The position numbers and the translations under genes are program-made. Below, piece after piece: positions 3,513-55,859 of a stretch of 64,000 nt of DNA; the first letter of the stretch is position 1; each line of letters begins with the position of its first letter. The DNA lies in assembly GCA_965235115.1 (NCBI GenBank), contig OZ249444.1, positions 6,200,001 through 6,264,000 of the forward strand, read 5' to 3'. The notes below the pieces were generated by a model. It was not told the origin of the DNA and made no database searches. It saw only the letters and a list, made by a program, of their open reading frames with translations. This stretch comes from Laetmonice hystrix. Lineage: Eukaryota.

Positions 3513-4050
3513 CAGACCACCCTCCAATCATCAGTGAGTGATTGGTAACAGACGGGTTTATCAAATCAGACCACCCTCCAATCATCAATGAGTGATTGGT
3601 AACAGACGGGTTTATCAAATCTGACCACCTCCAATCATCAGTGAGTGATTGGTAGCAGACGAGTTTATCAAATCAGACCACCCTCCAATCATCAGTGAGT
3701 GATTGGTAACAGACGAGTTTATCAAATCAGACCACCCTCCAATCGTCATGAGTGATTGGTAGCAGACGAGTTTATCAAATCAGGCCACCCTCCAATCATC
3801 AGTGAGTGATTGGTAACAGACGAGTTTATCAAATCAGACCACCCTCCAATCATCAGTGAGTGATTGGTAACAGACGAGTTTATCAAATCAGACCACCCTC
3901 CAATCATCAGTGAGTGATTGGTAACAGACGAGTTTATCAAATCAGACCACCCTCCAATCATCAGTGAGTGATTGGTAACAGACGAGTTTATCAATTCAGA
4001 CCACCCTCCAATCATCAGTGAGTGATTGGTAACAGACGAGTTGATCAAAT
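3513..4050. repeat. 54-bp minisatellite, about 10 copies
   Basis: Unit atcagaccaccctccaatcatcagtgagtgattggtaacagacgagtttatcaa. Confidence 0.95.
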
Positions 4051-11274: not shown

Positions 11275-14200
11275 ATGTATGAGGCGAGTGACTTGAGTCG
11301 ACATGCTGGGGGTCAGAATAACAGTTTTTCTGATGCAAATAGCAGCAGTCACGACATACGAAACTGTGGCTACAGTTCAGGGTATGCCCCCAGTGGGATG
11401 AATCGTTACGGGGTAACCTCTGAGGGCGCCGGTGAAGGCAGGATGAGGGCGGGGAGGCCAGGAGAGGGCGGCCCGGGTAGGATGGAGCACCCGGCCGTAT
11501 ACAGCCGGCCCCCGCTGCCACTGCCCCACCAGAGACAGGACCCTCTGCCATATCAGTACCCCAGTCCCCACGGCAAGAACACATACAATGGTAACTACAG
11601 TTACCACGACCAACCCCCAAACGGACCACTCCCGAGCCCTGTCCACTCCGGAGGGTACCCTGGAGGTCGCGGCAGGCCAGACGGTCACATAGACGATAGT
11701 CACAGGTGTAGTAGTCAACCGGCGCCGTCGCCCAGGGCCCAGAGGTCGGACCAGTATCATGGCTCGCCCGGTAAGACCGCTGCCGCCTACCGGCCGACTC
11801 AGCTCCCATACCGCGGGGACGGAGGTCCTCCACCCAGGGTCCCAGTGAGGCCAAGCGAGGAGATGTACAGCCCAGGGATCCCACCCGGCATTCCGAGCCC
11901 GTCTCCCCGACAGTTCCAGTCCCAAGGCGAGCCGCAATATTGGCCACTCACAGGTCGGGCATCCAGTCCACATGGTAGCAATAGCAGACTTTCAGGGCCA
12001 TCTACACCAAGTCCACACGGCAGCATGACCAGGCTCTCCAACCCACCCAGCCCAATGGGTAGTGGTCATAGACTCCCCAGCCCAGCCAATGCCAGCTTGG
12101 CTTACCACCCGTCCAGTCCACACAGGCCTGTTGCTGCCTTAGGAAGTCCACACAGTCCATCAGGACACGGTAACCAGTTCGCCAACGTGTTCAATTCAGT
12201 TTCAGCTGTTCGGAGACCAGCAAGCCCAGCTGGGTCCCAGAACAGTTCTCACAGTAGCCAACACCAAGGACTCACATCTAGTAGCCCAGTGGGTTCACCC
12301 TCACAAAGACTAGTGAACCAACACGTAGAGGAATCCCACGGCCCTTCCATGACACCAGGCCCATGGTACAACCCTCAGAGTGCCCCTGGCCCATACGCCC
12401 TCAGCCAGGGAAGGTCTCCACGAGGGCCCCTACCAGGAGGACAAAGTCCCTCCGAGGGGCTTTACGCGCGAGTCGGTCAATACGAGGGACAATACCGGTT
12501 GAATGCTGACTCCCCGTCTGCCCAGAGCAGATCGCCGAGGTCGCCCAATGGCGTCTACATCCACGAAGGAAATTTCCCGCGGACCCCAAGTCACCCAGAC
12601 TTACGGGAAGGTTCATTTCGTGCTGCTCCCAGTCAGTCGAGTCTGGCTGGCCCTGGGCTCCCTGGGCTCCCTGGGCAACCTGCAAGAAGTGGAAGCCTAT
12701 CTAGTCTCAGCAGGGACCACACGAGCCCGTCTGCTGGTCAGTCGGGCTTTCCTGATGGACCTTACCATCGATTACCCAACTCACGGGATCTTCAGGGCAG
12801 ACAGTTCGACATCTCTTCAAGTCAGTCCAACCTTCGCGATAATCAGTACAGACAACAACCTGCTAGTTACCAAGGCAATAGCAGCGGAGTAACCAACGGG
12901 TCAGGGGCTCCGGAGGGACTCTGTAATGTAAGTCCAGGACAGGTGAAAGATTTGCATAATGCAGGAAACTGTCATCCTAACAGAGCACCAAATTACTCTG
13001 ATGTAAAAGGACAAAAGATTAAAGGTGAGCGTAGTCCCAATGACATGAACTTTAGCAGAGTACCGAGCAATTATAGTCTCGATGAAGGACATTATATTAA
13101 TAGAGCTCTAGGCCACCCCGGTCTCAATGAAGGACAATACAGTAGAGCACCAAGCCATCCTAGTCTCAATGAAGGACATTATGTTAGAGCTCCAAGCCAT
13201 CCTGGTCTCAATGAAGGACATTATAGGAGAGCGCCAAGCCATTCTAGTCTCAGTGAAGGACACTATGATAGAGAATCAAGCCATCCTAATCTCGGCGAAG
13301 GATATTATAGTAGGACACCAAACCATCCTAGTCTAAATGAAGTACAGTATAGTAGAGCACCAAGTAATTCAAATCTCAGTGGAGAACAGTTCAGCAAAGC
13401 ACCAAGTCATCCTAGTCTATACGAAGGACAACATAGTAGGGCACCGAGCCATCTCAGTCCAACTGATCAATTAAATAGAGCGCCAAGCCAACCAAGTTTC
13501 AACAAAGGTCAGATAAGTAGAGCGCCGGGTCATGATAAAAGAACTTTAAGCCAATCTAATGTAACTGACGAACACCTTAACAGAACAGCTAGTTATACAA
13601 CTTTGAATGAAGGACATTCCCAACAGAATATTGAAATTTTTCATGACCTCGGGGGCGGTCCAAATGAGCAGTACGAAGGAGTCACAAATGGTGTCGACAC
13701 TTCTGAGGTCCCACATCGGCCACCCGGAGACGAGAGTGAGCCACTCGGAGATAGAAACTCAGCCACATCTGACGTAGCTGTGGCGTCCAGCGACTTGTAC
13801 AGACCTCAGTCTCGCAACACTCCGGAGGGTGGCGCCAGTGTGTCAGATCCCCAAGGAAGACCCCCTGTCGTCAGATCTAGAGCGGGAAGTCCCTCTGGGC
13901 CACCGCCGCCTCCTCCATCACATCCTCCAGTCACAGTGCCCGTGTTGTCACAGCAACGTCAGGAGACGATCGAGGTGGACGCTCCGCCCGCTGTGCCACC
14001 TCTCCCGTCCGCCTCCTCCTCCTGCCGCTCGGCGCCGCTGCACACTCAGCACAAGCCTCCAGTGCCGCCGCCCTATTCGTATCAGGCCAAGCAGAGACAG
14101 AAGCAGCCGTCGCTGCTGTCGTATCCAACAAGCTCGCAGGTACACTCAGCAGAATCCGTCCCGCCACCGCCGCTGTCTCAGCCGTCGCGGCACGGCACGT

Positions 14201-14288
14201 CGCTCGCACCACGTCAGTCGGTCAGCAGCCATCAACGCGAGCGACCAGCCGCCAGGTACAATCGACACTACTACTACGATACTAACAG
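11275..14288 (+). CDS. Giant candidate alternative first exon, 1004-aa Ser/Pro/Gly/His-rich disordered region
   Basis: aaaATG start, 3-kb uninterrupted ORF with diverged internal protein repeats, donor AAC AG|gtacgt in phase 2. The ORF otherwise runs on to a stop at 14370. Confidence 0.75.
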
Positions 14289-14796
14289 GTACGTAACCAC
14301 AGCAGCGGCGGCATCCAGCCGCTTTCCCAAGCTGCTGACGTTGATATTTCAGGGGTATTTTCAGCAATGAGGGGGAGGGAGGGGGGGAGCCACCCACCTG
14401 AGTTAGGAGCCGAGGATTGAGTGGGTTGATATCGCTGCTGTTGAAGCAGCTGGTAGAGAGAGATGTTGGTCCGGGATCGCTGAGACTGCCTCAGTGTACA
14501 TGGGTTAAAATGTATACCGGCCACACACAGTGCCAGGCGTGGATGGATACACAGTGGGGAGCTAGACCACTTGGTGTGTATTGCCTTAATTAGCCCTGAC
14601 AGATGTGTGTTAATTGTATGCAATTGTTCTAATTGCTACAAATTCAATTTGGATGATCCTGGAGGAATATAGCTGTGTGAATACCGGTAGCGGCAAAGCA
14701 AGATTCGTGGCTCTACTGCTGAAGCTACTCCTGCAGGTGTTGGCCTAGGAAACAGCCGGGTGGTGGATTAAGCTGTTGAATGGCTGTTGCGGCCTG

Positions 14797-36260: not shown

Positions 36261-37008
36261 GTGATTTGGTGATACTTGTAGAGAGACCAGGGGACATGAG
36301 CCTGATGACGACATTCACCACATTCCTAACGAGCGTAGCCACCCCGTGGTTGTCATAGCGACCTCCTTCCATGGCGCGAGGTTGTTGGTCGAGGAGAGCC
36401 GGGGTGGATTGGATCATGTCATGTAGGACAGGCTCATCATGTCGGCCCACGTTATCTACGATTGTAATAGACCTGTCATGTACAGATCAGGCCGATCGCG
36501 GGCCTAGTAATGCTCTATACAGCCCCGCCCTGTTGGTGTCCGACAGGGTCGGGTGTGCAGGCCACAAAACGGTACATTCCATTAGAAGCCAGCGCCGGGG
36601 TCGGAAGGTCACACGTAGGATTAAATTGCTGTCAACCCACAACTTGACCCCCATAAATACACCCCTTGTACGTATACAAGACACCAACTATCCATACCCA
36701 GGCACCCAAACCAAGGTGTATGGTACTCGAGCCCACTTGGATAAACCTGGTTGGGTTTACCATAGTCTGTCAAATAGTCATCTTTGTTTTCAGGTTGCTA
36801 AGAGAGGCTCGCAGCTATTGGAGTTGGTGACGATACATCGGAACCTCGTCTTGACATCATTTATAGCATAGTTTCACCTCAGAAATAGGTCAAGGCAATT
36901 GTTGGATAAACGCCAATGGTATTGTCCCTTTTGACCCACATTGATGATCCGAGATGCTATATATAAGACATTGTCCAATAGTGAGAGTTTGCATTGTTGT
37001 ACTTGCAG

Positions 37009-37165
37009 AGACCCACGGAAGATTCTGCTAAAGAAAGGCACCACCGGGCTGGGCTTCAACATCGTGGGCGGGGAGGATGGGGAGGGAATCTTCATCTCGT
37101 TCATCCTGGCTGGAGGACCCGCCGACTTGAGCGGGGAACTCCACCGCGGCGACCAGCTCCTGTCG
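37009..37165 (+). CDS. dlg1: dlg exon, PDZ3 N-half (R)[52 protein letters not shown]
   Basis: Acceptor ttgcag|A, donor TCG|gtaagt, 157 nt, phase 2 to 0, PDZ GLGF motif. Confidence 0.96.
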
Positions 37166-37195
37166 GTAAGTCTGGCCTCGTTACGCTCCTGTTTG

Positions 37196-51343: not shown

Positions 51344-52611
51344 GTGAGAGAGTGTAGAGAGTTTTTCTGACACGTGAGAAAGCTGAGAAGTTGAGGACAT
51401 GGAGCCTGACAGCTGGGTATACCCCCAGTCGGCCTGGTGACCTAGCTGACTACTGGACCGTGCACCTGTTGACACACACACGGCACCGGGTAGTCAGACC
51501 TTCCCTGACATCTTAACGATCATTGACTAACCAGCCGTGTACCGATACAGGGGACAGCCACCCCGGCCGGCCAAGGCGGCTTGACCCAATTAAACCCGCC
51601 TCCATCTGGTCGGATACAGGGAGCAATCAGCAGAGACAGCAGACCGAATTCTGAATTAGCCATTGCCTGTTGAGACGTAGCCTAGGGGAAGGCCGTCGTT
51701 CTGAAGGTTGTGACTTTTTGATGTTTTTGAGCGCGGCTTGGGTGGAGGATTGTAATAACGGTATACCGTGAAAACAGACAACAACAACAGTACAGCCACA
51801 GTGTGTGTGTGCCCACTCAGGGATATCTTGGGAATTTGAAGGAGGCACGTGCAGTGGCCAGGGATGTAGGGTATGTATGTTTGTACACGCAGTGCCAGTC
51901 AGATCACTATGGCGTTCCGAGGTCAACATGTTAGGAATACATGTTGTAGGTCGGCAGGTAGGTATACCGTTATGGTAGGGATACACAGCGATGTCTTATA
52001 TCACATGCTATAGGTACTATATGTGTGGGTTTGTGTGTGTGTACATCGACGCCTCAACTCGTTCATATCTAATACACAGACATCAACACACAGTCACAGA
52101 ATTACGCACGGTGTTGCGGGTACTTCGTAGCCTGATCCCGGTAGTGTTGGCGTGTTGGACTGAGAGGTAACTTACAAGTACCAGTGGTGCAATCACAAAT
52201 TCCTAGAAATGATTCATCGACATTGACAGCAACTTACGCTACCAGCATTTCAAAACTGATGTCCTTTCACCAGTTCACAGCCATTTAGTATGGGTGCCTG
52301 GTATGCGTCAATAGTGAGGAACTTCAGGATTTAGAGTTTGCACATGTCAACATGAGCCTGAATAAACACAAGAATGTCACCCGCATTCTGCTGATAATTG
52401 AGGTCATTTACCGTTGTGCAGTAGAAGGCTCATGTTGTTTATTATTAGACCTGCCATATAATGTCTGATGCTATTTTGGAACAAGTAGTTTAGTGTGTAG
52501 AGCTCTCAGTACTTTAGGTTGCTAATAGGTAACGGCGTGATGTGAATTTAAACCCTGTGCAGTGGTACATCAACATGTATTATTTGGGATTTGGCGTTAA
52601 TGTCTCAGCCA

Positions 52612-52792
52612 TGGCGTTATTTAGAATTTTTGATGACGTATGTTGTAGCCGTGACGTAATTATTTGTGACCCGGCGTTATTGAGAATTTTTGATGACGTA
52701 TGTTGTAGCCTTGACGTAATTATTTGTGACCCGGCGTTATTCAGAATTTTTGATGACGTATGTTGTAGCCGTGACGTAATTATTTGTGACCC
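52612..52792. repeat. 60-bp tandem repeat, 3 copies, ending about 30 nt before the PDZ3b acceptor
   Basis: ggcgttatttagaatttttgatgacgtatgttgtagccgtgacgtaattatttgtgacc-type unit. Confidence 0.92.
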
Positions 52793-52820: not shown

Positions 52821-52923
52821 GTGAACGGTATCGACCTCCGTGATGCCACTCACGAGCAGGCCGCTGCAGCACTCAAAGGAGCCGGAGATACGGTTGAGAT
52901 CGTCGCCCAGTACAAACCAGAAG
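52821..52923 (+). CDS. dlg1: dlg exon, PDZ3 C-half [34 protein letters not shown]
   Basis: ttttag|GTG...GAA G|gtataa, 103 nt, phase 0 to 1; continues the PDZ3 frame. Confidence 0.95.
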
Positions 52924-53587
52924 GTATAACAAACCCAGCAGTAGAACTTATAATGTTCCAGCAAGTACAAAAAGCGATGATGTACTAGTAGTCAATGAAG
53001 TCCCTTTTTTTTGTTAGCAAACAAAAGCATTCATTACTGAGGGCAAATGACGATTTTTCTGGCGATTTGTTTTTATCAGGACGAATATTTGTCTGCAAAA
53101 GGCATAAATTTGCATGCGTACACAATTTTTTTTAAACTTTTGAACTTCTTTATATATTTTAAAAACTTTAAGTGGCAGATATATTGGTAAAGAATTTTGA
53201 TTTTTTTGGGAGGAAGAGGTAGCCCACATTAAGAAGAAAGAACAAAAACAACAAAAGCCAAAGGTTTTCTCCTAAAAGGTCAAAAAAGCCAAAGTAGTTG
53301 TTAGTAGATTTCGGGAGAATTGAACCTCTCTGGGTCCGTAAACCTGCGTGAGAATGCCACTTCAGCTGCCCTTCGACCCGACACCTGGGATGTAACTATA
53401 CACTGTAGATATATATAAGCAAGACAATGTGTCGTTCCCCCAGTAGGGTTGCTATATGTCAGACGTGTAGAACTGGTGATGGTACCTAGTAGTTGAACCC
53501 TAACTACATGTATAGGACGGCATTGTGACCCCTGACCCTATTATTACCGAAGTCAGGTCTTGTCTTTGTATTCTGTTATAAGAATGT

Positions 53588-53716
53588 AGACAATATGTAT
53601 GTCAGTAGACAATATGTATGTCAGTGGACAATATGTATGTCAGTAGACAATATGTTTGTCAGTAGATAATATGTATGTCAGTAGACAATATGTATGTCAG
53701 TAGACAATATGTATGG
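53588..53716. repeat. 20-bp tandem repeat, about 6 copies
   Basis: agacaatatgtatgtcagt-type unit. Confidence 0.9.
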
Positions 53717-54154
53717 CTTGTCTCCTTGATACGGACATTAGCACCTTGATTGTATATTATATTTTTTCTGCGTCACAAAGGTGAATAGCCTCATGTAGAC
53801 GTACATATGTAACATTGTTGCACTTTTTCTCTCCTCTTTTAAATTCATTTCTTTTCATTTTCAATCCTTCTTACGTACAGTTTAGTAATTTATTTTGGGG
53901 TCTTTCTATATTGCATGGTGAACTTATTTTCACGTCTTCGATCGTTATGTTTTCCTTAGTATGGACTGGCCTCTGGTTTTCGTTGCATGCTGCCAAAGTC
54001 AACGATTTATGCCCAAAATTTTGTTCCGTAGTCGTAATTGTATAGTGCATATATGGTGTACTTATTATCACAATAGAAGGTAGATGTAATGATTACTGTA
54101 ATTGGTAGATAATTATTCGTCCACAGTGGATAACGGGTATTTTTATCTGTGCAG

Positions 54155-54205
54155 CATACAACCGCTTTGAGGCGAAGATCCATGACCTCCGCGAGGAGAT
54201 GAGGG
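54155..54205 (+). CDS. dlg1: Candidate 51-nt cassette exon, diverged duplicate of the alpha3 helix: AYNRFEAKIHDLREEMR
   Basis: gtgcag|CA TAC AAC CGC...AGG G|gtacct, phase 1 to 1. Five synonymous differences from exon 54311. Donor is weak. Confidence 0.6.
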
Positions 54206-54310
54206 GTACCTATACATTTACATAATATTCAAATTAAGCGTGGTCCATTTGCATGCCATTGAAGATACGTGTATTAAGGAGAACGGTTCTCATTTTGATG
54301 CTCTTTGCAG

Positions 54311-54413
54311 AGTACAACCGATTTGAGTCGAAGATACACGATCTCCGCGAACAGATGATGAACACAAGTACTGGAAGCCTGCGCACGACGCAGAAACGTA
54401 CACTCTACGTCAG
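54311..54413 (+). CDS. dlg1: dlg exon, PDZ3 alpha3 helix and linker [35 protein letters not shown]
   Basis: tttgcag|AG...AG|gtacga, 103 nt, phase 1 to 2; matches the DLG linker. Confidence 0.95.
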
Positions 54414-54427
54414 GTACGAATCGCCAG

Positions 54428-54461
54428 CCAATGGCAGCAAACCACTGGTTGCCATGGCGAC
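54428..54461. promoter_or_regulatory. CCAAT plus RFX X-box-like motif just after the linker exon
   Basis: gccaatgg near 54428 and GTTGCCATGGCGAC at 54448-54461. Confidence 0.4.
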
Positions 54462-54757
54462 CACGGGCCCGTCAAACTGGCAGAAACTTACAACCACAAC
54501 TTGCTCAACCAGTCACCATCTATAGAAATAATAGTCTCAAGAATTAAGATTGCCTTTAGTTATGGATATTGCATGTTGGGTGGGAGGCTCCATTGCTTTA
54601 TGTCATAATATTGGCTCGAGACGCAGCCGAGAGCTAATATATATTGTAGGGCACGAAGCATGGAGCGTTACCAACGAATACAACATCTACGTTTAGCACT
54701 CTGTTAGAATTAAAGATTACATAAGGCCTTTAGCAAAGTTACATTATTAATTTGCAG

Positions 54758-54934
54758 GGCTCTCTTTGACTACGACCCGACCAAGGACAGCGGGCTGCCG
54801 AGTAAGGGATTGGCGTTCAAATATGGCGACATTTTGCATGTGACAAATGCCAGCGACGATGAGTGGTGGCAAGCACGAAAACTGCTGCCCGAGGGCGAGG
54901 ATGAGGGACTGGCCATCATCCCCAGCAAACGGAG
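54758..54934 (+). CDS. dlg1: dlg exon, SH3 [59 protein letters not shown]
   Basis: tttgcag|G...GGAG|gtaaaa, 177 nt, phase 2 to 2; ALFDY and WW SH3 motifs. Confidence 0.96.
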
Positions 54935-55265: not shown

Positions 55266-55350
55266 GGTTGAAAGAAAAGAACGAGCACGTCTCAAAAATG
55301 TCAAGTTCCATGGCAAAGGGGCGGGCACAGAGAAAGGTGGACCCATTGAT
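55266..55350 (+). CDS. dlg1: dlg exon, HOOK helix VERKERARLKNVKFHGKGAGTEKGGPID
   Basis: ttccag|G...GAT|gtaagt, 85 nt, phase 2 to 0. Confidence 0.93.
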
Positions 55351-55750
55351 GTAAGTTGATGATAGTACGTGGCTAAGGTTGTAGCTACTCGCAGTGTCTA
55401 AGGTGTCATGTATGCAATCATGGTGGAAAATAAGGTATGACGTAAAACACATAGGTGTGTTGCTTAGTGACTGGCAAACTGTTTGTTGCTGGTGAGGGTA
55501 GTATTGACGTAAGTATGTGTACCCCCACCAAAAAAACAAAGCTCTGGACGTTGACGTTTCCCCCTTGACACCCCCCCCCCCGCCCGATTCATGATATAAA
55601 GTTTTTACATTTGCTGTGAAAATATGTTGTCAAAAGAAGTTGTTAAAAATCACAAAGAGAATCCCTTTGTCTGGTATAATGTTGTATTTGAAGTACCGGT
55701 ACATTTTGTATTTATAAGAAATCCTCAGTGAGATTGGTTTGTTATTGCAG

Positions 55751-55859
55751 CCCATGGCCACAGATAAAAGGAAGAAGAACTTTTCGTTCAGTCGGAAGTT
55801 CCCGTTCATGAAGAGTAAGGACCAGAGTGGCAGTGAGGACGCTATCAGTGCTGACGAAC
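55751..55859 (+). CDS. dlg1: dlg exon, I3-like insert PMATDKRKKNFSFSRKFPFMKSKDQSGSEDAISADE
   Basis: ttgcag|CCC...GAA C|gtaagt, 109 nt, phase 0 to 1; DKRKKN..FSRKFPF resembles the DLG1 I3 (protein 4.1-binding) insert. Confidence 0.92.

Follow-up and report, generated by a model that had tools for sequence, protein, structure and literature searches.

The DLG-family gene of Laetmonice hystrix carries, 105 nt upstream of the exon for the alpha3 helix and linker (exon B), a second and diverged copy of the helix-coding segment (copy A). We read copy A as a real, translated and alternatively spliced cassette exon which arose by partial tandem exon duplication and whose use is minor or tissue-restricted, and we give this reading a probability of about 0.6. 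It draws on the pattern of substitution between the two copies, on the preservation of copy A in a second species and on an annelid relative in which a doubled helix is part of a spliced transcript.

A second alpha3 segment in a DLG-family gene

The window (the whole 64,000-nt stretch of DNA that was analysed) holds a DLG-family MAGUK gene of a spiralian animal on the + strand. Exons for PDZ3, the alpha3 helix and linker, SH3, HOOK and GK follow one another in order, as seen by tblastn, in a spliced RNA contig and by a PDB match to PSD-95, and in the DLG tree the sequence falls among the spiralians without a firm position. With HSP70, the best named matches reach only 77-78% and are spread over annelids, bivalves, a brachiopod and a nemertean. 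The features are as follows.

~37004-37171, + strand: first PDZ3 exon (tblastn with DLG proteins and spliced contig)
52821-52923, + strand: second PDZ3 exon (VNGIDLRD...VAQYKPE), 3' end in phase 1 (G/gt; the slash marks the exon boundary here and below) (translation, tblastn, X4 contig)
54128-54154, + strand: acceptor side of copy A with pyrimidine tract and AG, part of the duplication (counterpart of 54278-54310 ahead of exon B in the alignment)
54155-54205, + strand: copy A, a putative cassette exon of 51 nt and phase 1-1 that codes for AYNRFEAKIHDLREEMR (sequence, pS/pN, P0001)
54206-54255, + strand: GTACCT donor and conserved intron flank up to TGCATG at 54250-54255 (P0001 alignment, motif scan)
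54311-54413, + strand: exon B, constitutive alpha3 helix and linker, parent of the duplication, 103 nt (PSD-95 match, RNA contig)
54758-54934, + strand: SH3 exon, spliced to exon B in RNA (tblastn, RNA contig)
ending at 55350 and starting at 55751, + strand: HOOK exons (tblastn and spliced contig)
from ~62791, + strand: GK domain (tblastn with DLG proteins and spliced contig)

Exon B aligns to residues 394-430 of PSD-95 chains in the PDB, that is, to the alpha3 helix and linker, and these chains also bear out the statement in an earlier note on this DNA that EAKIHDLRE matches the vertebrate DLG form.

Some minor observations concern the same gene and genome. Upstream in the gene, positions 11275-14370 of the + strand form an open frame of 1031 aa which is of low complexity and rich in Pro, Ser and Gly. 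At 52600-52790, a 60-nt unit (…gacgtatgttgtagccgtgacgtaattatttgtgacccggcgttatt…) stands in three tandem copies, the last of which ends ~30 nt short of the acceptor at 52821, where the second PDZ3 exon begins. Position 54878 in the SH3 exon is A in the window and G in the RNA contig (run X4) and in one DNA run (X3), and this is probably an allele rather than editing, since the change is synonymous (CGA to CGG, Arg). Mitochondrial COX1 (contig C35, 4760-6100; L079) has 12 in-frame TGA codons, which are read as Trp.

Frame, phase and origin of copy A

Copy A is preceded by tgtgcAG and followed by GTACCT, and the peptide given above results when it is joined to position 52923, at which the PDZ3 exon ends in phase 1. 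Aligned with the first 51 nt of exon B, 40 of the 51 nt are identical; by codon, 8 of the 17 are identical, 5 differ synonymously and 4 are replaced, so that 13 of the 17 residues are kept. The in-frame duplicate of the alpha3 segment that the earlier note had described is thus exact in its coordinates, its frame and its codon counts. Local alignment places the homology at 54128-54202 versus 54278-54358, with a score of 42, whereas 300 shuffles reached 17.5 at most. It spans 27 nt of acceptor region and 48 nt of exon and halts at the copy A donor. The two neighbouring exons are significantly homologous with the splice-site flank included, and they are the only helix copies in the whole 627-Mb genome (35 contigs), in which the window is C10:6200001-6264000. 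A tandem duplication of ~80 nt that took in the acceptor region and, from the alpha3-helix exon, its leading 51 nt would account for this arrangement.

From 54155 to the in-frame TAA (54224-54226), GT occurs once, at 54206, and therefore the only productive exon that copy A can form is 51 nt long with phase 1-1. Exon B has phase 1-2 and, by direct reading of its sequence, contains no internal phase-1 AG. Because the phases differ and exon B offers no internal acceptor, copy A could only be added to exon B, doubling the helix; the 51-nt phase 1-1 cassette put forward earlier is the single form that the sequence leaves open. Two other arrangements were considered and set aside: a mutually exclusive pair, as the frame is lost when copy A takes the place of exon B, and a poison exon, as inclusion of copy A stays in frame. 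In a simple hand comparison with the splice-site consensus, the acceptor and donor of copy A came out roughly equal to those of the four junctions used in RNA.

Signs of selection on the encoded peptide

By the Nei-Gojobori method, copy A and exon B differ at 6 of 8.8 synonymous sites and at 4 of 42.2 replacement sites (Fisher p = 0.0008), corresponding to a pS of 0.68, a pN of 0.09 and a dN/dS of ~0.06. Since synonymous sites are near saturation, the duplication is old and gene conversion is excluded, and the selective sparing of replacement sites points to selection on the peptide, which an RNA-only or neutral element would not produce.

An exhaustive search with a profile of exon B returned one protein with two matched stretches. 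This protein (P0001) is a fragment of an ORF that continues across the intron; it comes from a 444-kb contig of a second species (ENA assembly ERZ26222911) and holds both copies. It was compared with the window via degenerate back-translation, which gives the minimum number of mismatches at informative positions and is blind to synonymous sites of copy A, with the following counts.

Upstream intron: 29/137, plus 18 gap columns
Last 25 nt before the copy A acceptor: 3/21
Copy A: 0/45
45 nt past the copy A donor: 1/36
Next 40 nt (mid-intron): 11/33
Exon B: 0/86

Copy A is conserved like the constitutive exon B, though the introns of P0001 differ by at least 21-33%. Purifying selection is indicated both by a pN far below pS between the copies and by an agreement of copy A with P0001 that lies above the intron level. 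The earlier description of copy A as old yet conserved at the protein level agrees well with the low dN/dS and with the unchanged informative positions of P0001. A search of limited reach with residues 52-92 of P0001 for further fragments bearing copy A returned P0001 itself alone.

The second species also bears on a shortened product. Should acceptor 54155 be used without the donor, translation would run into the TAA and yield a truncated protein with PDZ1-3 only that ends in RGTYTFT*, or the transcript would become an NMD target. The tail and the stop which the earlier note had read are indeed present in the window. The PDZ-only protein that it drew from them finds no support, as P0001 has His in place of the stop and reads on without interruption across the 105-nt intron to exon B, and no AATAAA or ATTAAA lies within 54200-54708; the region is also without any RNA contig. 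We regard use of the acceptor in this manner as very improbable.

Transcripts of the species and the conserved flank

Spliced contigs were available from X4, one of four runs of the sample, and such contigs drop minor variants. In a single X4 contig (1264 nt, depth 26.5), 54311 follows directly on 52923 and copy A is left out; the other junctions of the contig connect 54413 to 54758, 54934 to ~55266 and 55350 to 55751. X4 depth over 54143-54253 is zero, and no RNA contig covers copy A. The default mRNA thus skips copy A, as the sole spliced contig joins the flanking exons directly, and because contigs drop rare variants, this sets no tight upper bound on inclusion. Of the two forms looked for in transcripts of the species, the X4 contigs show the skipped one alone. 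The use of acceptor 54155 with junctions 52923-54155 and 54205-54311, as the earlier note would have it, therefore found no confirmation in the one spliced contig at hand. Inclusion of copy A is probably minor or tissue-restricted.

The conserved 45 nt after the copy A donor end adjoining TGCATG at 54250-54255, and the residues Cys-Met of P0001 at the site of the motif permit TGYATG. Further copies of TGCATG lie upstream of copy A at 53912 and 53984. Regulated cassette exons typically have conserved flanks. A downstream (U)GCAUG is an Rbfox-type element which enhances the inclusion of cassette exons (PMC11874969, PMC3967051). Copy A resembles exons enhanced in this way in having TGCATG 45 nt downstream of its donor within a conserved flank and differs from them in having a single downstream motif. 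An Rbfox-type factor that acts on this conserved TGCATG may promote the inclusion of copy A.

The same conserved flank could be read differently, with the block 54128-54255 as a conserved non-coding decoy or pseudo-exon, a splicing-regulatory element that works in the RNA to control how the 1.4-kb intron is removed or exon B is used, and that is translated rarely if at all. Such a role would fit with conservation in P0001 that reaches 45 nt past the donor, into would-be non-coding sequence, and with the fact that skipping alone is seen in RNA of the species. It does not explain why synonymous sites are saturated while replacement sites are kept between copy A and exon B, a mark of selection on the peptide, nor why the frame, AG and GT of copy A are all intact, and a doubled helix is translated in a relative (L008, below). 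We hold a decoy to be unlikely, though less so than the truncated product.

A doubled helix in an annelid relative

A scan of metagenome and metatranscriptome contigs with an alignment of exon B gave 76 loci, and a helix HMM run over all 76 detected a second copy, besides that in the window, in one of them alone. This locus (L008) is a spliced transcript contig of 4.7 kb with an ORF of 641 aa that extends from PDZ2 to the stop of GK; in the DLG tree it groups with Platynereis (support 99/88) and represents a Platynereis-like annelid. It reads ...VAQYRPE/AYSCFEERIYELRDQMLNTTNPQ/EYNRFEAKISDLREQMM..., with the helix doubled at the same phase-1 junction as in the window. The insert is 69 nt long, of phase 1-1 and frame-preserving, and it retains the helix pattern Tyr, Phe, Glu, Ile, Leu, Arg and Met. 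L008 thus shows that an mRNA with a doubled helix does occur in nature. An Ala start is common to the L008 insert (G/CC) and copy A of the window (G/CA), which favours a single origin, that is, an ancient duplication followed by losses, over two independent ones; the differing 3' ends (51 versus 69 nt) and the patchy distribution leave both histories compatible with the sequences.

No second copy turned up in seven other spiralian genomic loci that show the whole intron between PDZ3 and exon B (L001-L005, L007 and L011), nor in P0013, nor among the more distant genomic loci that form the EFSQFEAKI-type group. Among ~250 DLG proteins, none has a doubled helix, and a search with residues 205-300 of L008 gave 7545 DLG matches, of which none of the best 120 carries two helices. 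On conservation in related taxa, which had been proposed as a check, the outcome is divided: copy A is kept in P0001 and the helix is doubled in L008, but a copy is absent from most relatives examined. A weak match at 622-663 of L002 (FSESFHDKRNDIMN), without nucleotide-level support, was rejected as chance.

In one of the seven loci, L004, positions 3733-3786 may be a decayed copy of the acceptor region together with 15 nt from the start of the helix exon (…tttcGG/AATACAGTCGATTT…, EYSRF). It lies ~260 nt upstream of the real exon, has GG in place of AG and reaches a borderline score of 18 against a shuffle maximum of 15.5. Such a remnant without AG, the absence of the copy from most relatives and the skipping of copy A in the sole RNA contig are what one would see if copy A were a neutral relic of the tandem duplication, an unused chance survivor. 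At synonymous saturation, however, the frame and most residues of such a relic should be gone, yet 13 of 17 residues are kept, and the probability of 0/45 mismatches in P0001 where introns are at least 21% different is approximately (0.79)^45, about 2e-5. A neutral relic is thus highly improbable, and a translated cassette exon is our preferred reading of copy A.

As a separate observation, the beginning of the SH3 exon (ALFDYSLS…) is partially repeated three times in tandem at 2385-2639 of the distant relative L045, upstream of the real SH3 exon at 2817-2984.

Predicted structure and effect of inclusion

In PSD-95, Tyr397 and Phe400 hold alpha3 against PDZ3; the helix tunes ligand binding, and its undocking weakens the contact between PDZ3 and SH3 (PMC3935999, PMC7094393). 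Copy A keeps the equivalents of PSD-95 Tyr397, Arg399, Phe400, Glu401 and Lys403, residues to which these papers ascribe contact with PDZ3 by packing and an influence on ligand affinity. Its residues A-Y-N-R-F-E-A-K stand directly behind ...QYKPE, in the same register as alpha3, with the docking Tyr and Phe both present.

The doubled arrangement was modelled with AlphaFold2 on 150 residues of L008 comprising PDZ3 and both helices, a 493-residue model being too poor in PDZ3. PDZ3 is predicted with confidence (pLDDT 85-97), both helices with a low pLDDT of 48-63, which makes their geometry provisional. The first helix (87-105) starts where alpha3 starts and is followed, after a short break, by the second (110-129). 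Superposed on PSD-95 PDZ3 with alpha3 (5jxb_C), residues 1-106 of the model fall on 305-410 with an rmsd of 1.0 and a Z of 17.1, and residues 1-99 align to 308-406 of 5d13_A, also with an rmsd of 1.0. Since the register is the same and the model superposes on PSD-95 alpha3, it is most likely the inserted copy that docks on PDZ3, and the helix of the ancestral exon would become an extension of 17 residues in the linker to SH3.

Applied to the window, the default mRNA, which skips copy A, encodes the single ancestral helix of exon B. Inclusion would insert 17 residues directly after PDZ3 with the docking Tyr and Phe of alpha3 kept; copy A would then occupy the alpha3 docking site and displace the ancestral helix by 17 residues into the linker between PDZ3 and SH3. 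The predicted effect is a change both of the helix that tunes PDZ3 and of the spacing of PDZ3 from the SH3-GK unit.

A wider proposal, which we put forward tentatively and trust clearly less than the cassette itself, is that of a spiralian DLG splice switch that is ancient and was repeatedly retained or invented. It would place a second alpha3-type helix between PDZ3 and the original one, exchange the copy that docks on PDZ3 and make the PDZ3-SH3 linker longer by one helix. Its use would be tissue-specific, perhaps in neurons through Rbfox, and would retune the affinity of PDZ3 as well as the coupling within the PDZ3-SH3-GK unit.

Relation to known systems

The alpha3 extension of PDZ3 is a textbook example of how an element outside the domain proper can tune both binding and the coupling between domains, and to our knowledge it has hitherto been studied only by truncation, mutation and phosphomimics. 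Regulation through alpha3 in PSD-95 and DLG is known via phosphorylation of Tyr397 or experimental truncation (PMC3935999; PMC7094393). Exon B aligns to this extension and copy A keeps its docking residues; what would set copy A apart is the tandem doubling. A full-text literature search yielded no description of a doubled alpha3 or of a natural isoform with two tandem alpha3 segments, which is in line with the statement in the earlier note that no account of such a splice switch was known. What appears to be new, judging from the sequence, is an additive partial-exon copy with a new donor that duplicates the regulatory helix of a much-studied domain. A natural two-helix isoform would be an evolutionary experiment on the alpha3 question; one is expressed in an annelid relative, and in at least two species besides this relative the copy shows constraint on its protein sequence.

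Kondrashov and Koonin in 2001 and Letunic et al. in 2002 reportedly described alternative splicing that originates from tandem exon duplication. It forms a known class (PMC9013439, PMC9741552). Copy A agrees with the members of this class in consisting of adjacent homologous coding segments of equal phase, in its old age and in its constraint at the protein level. It differs in that only the 5' half of the exon was copied, with a new donor, and in being additive rather than substitutive. Copy A is thus a clear example of a partial-exon tandem duplication that leads to an additive cassette and not to mutually exclusive exons. Annotation of genes from shallow RNA data will miss this cassette.

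The inserts I1-I5 of DLG1/SAP97 and other MAGUK variants are located N-terminal of PDZ1 or in HOOK, between SH3 and GK. Like copy A, the DLG1/SAP97 cassettes are short and frame-preserving and alter the cooperation of MAGUK domains; unlike copy A, they lie at other positions and are not duplicates of a neighbouring segment.

Two further proteins have inserts which share with copy A the phase-1 intron position and the preserved frame, with sequences unrelated to the helix. In a Dlg cDNA protein of Platynereis dumerilii (P0132), 7 aa (AMENVFV) stand at residues ~484-490 between ...QYRPE and EYNRF. An alternative acceptor that precedes the helix exon by 21 nt may account for them, as their back-translation has an end that resembles a 3' splice site (…GTTTTTGTAG/AG). 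The predicted isoform X1 of DLG3 from Pelobates fuscus (P0144) has 24 aa (VGYKSVQMHSSGSMDLMISGRPQQ) at the junction of PDZ3 and alpha3, an insert that would part alpha3 from PDZ3.
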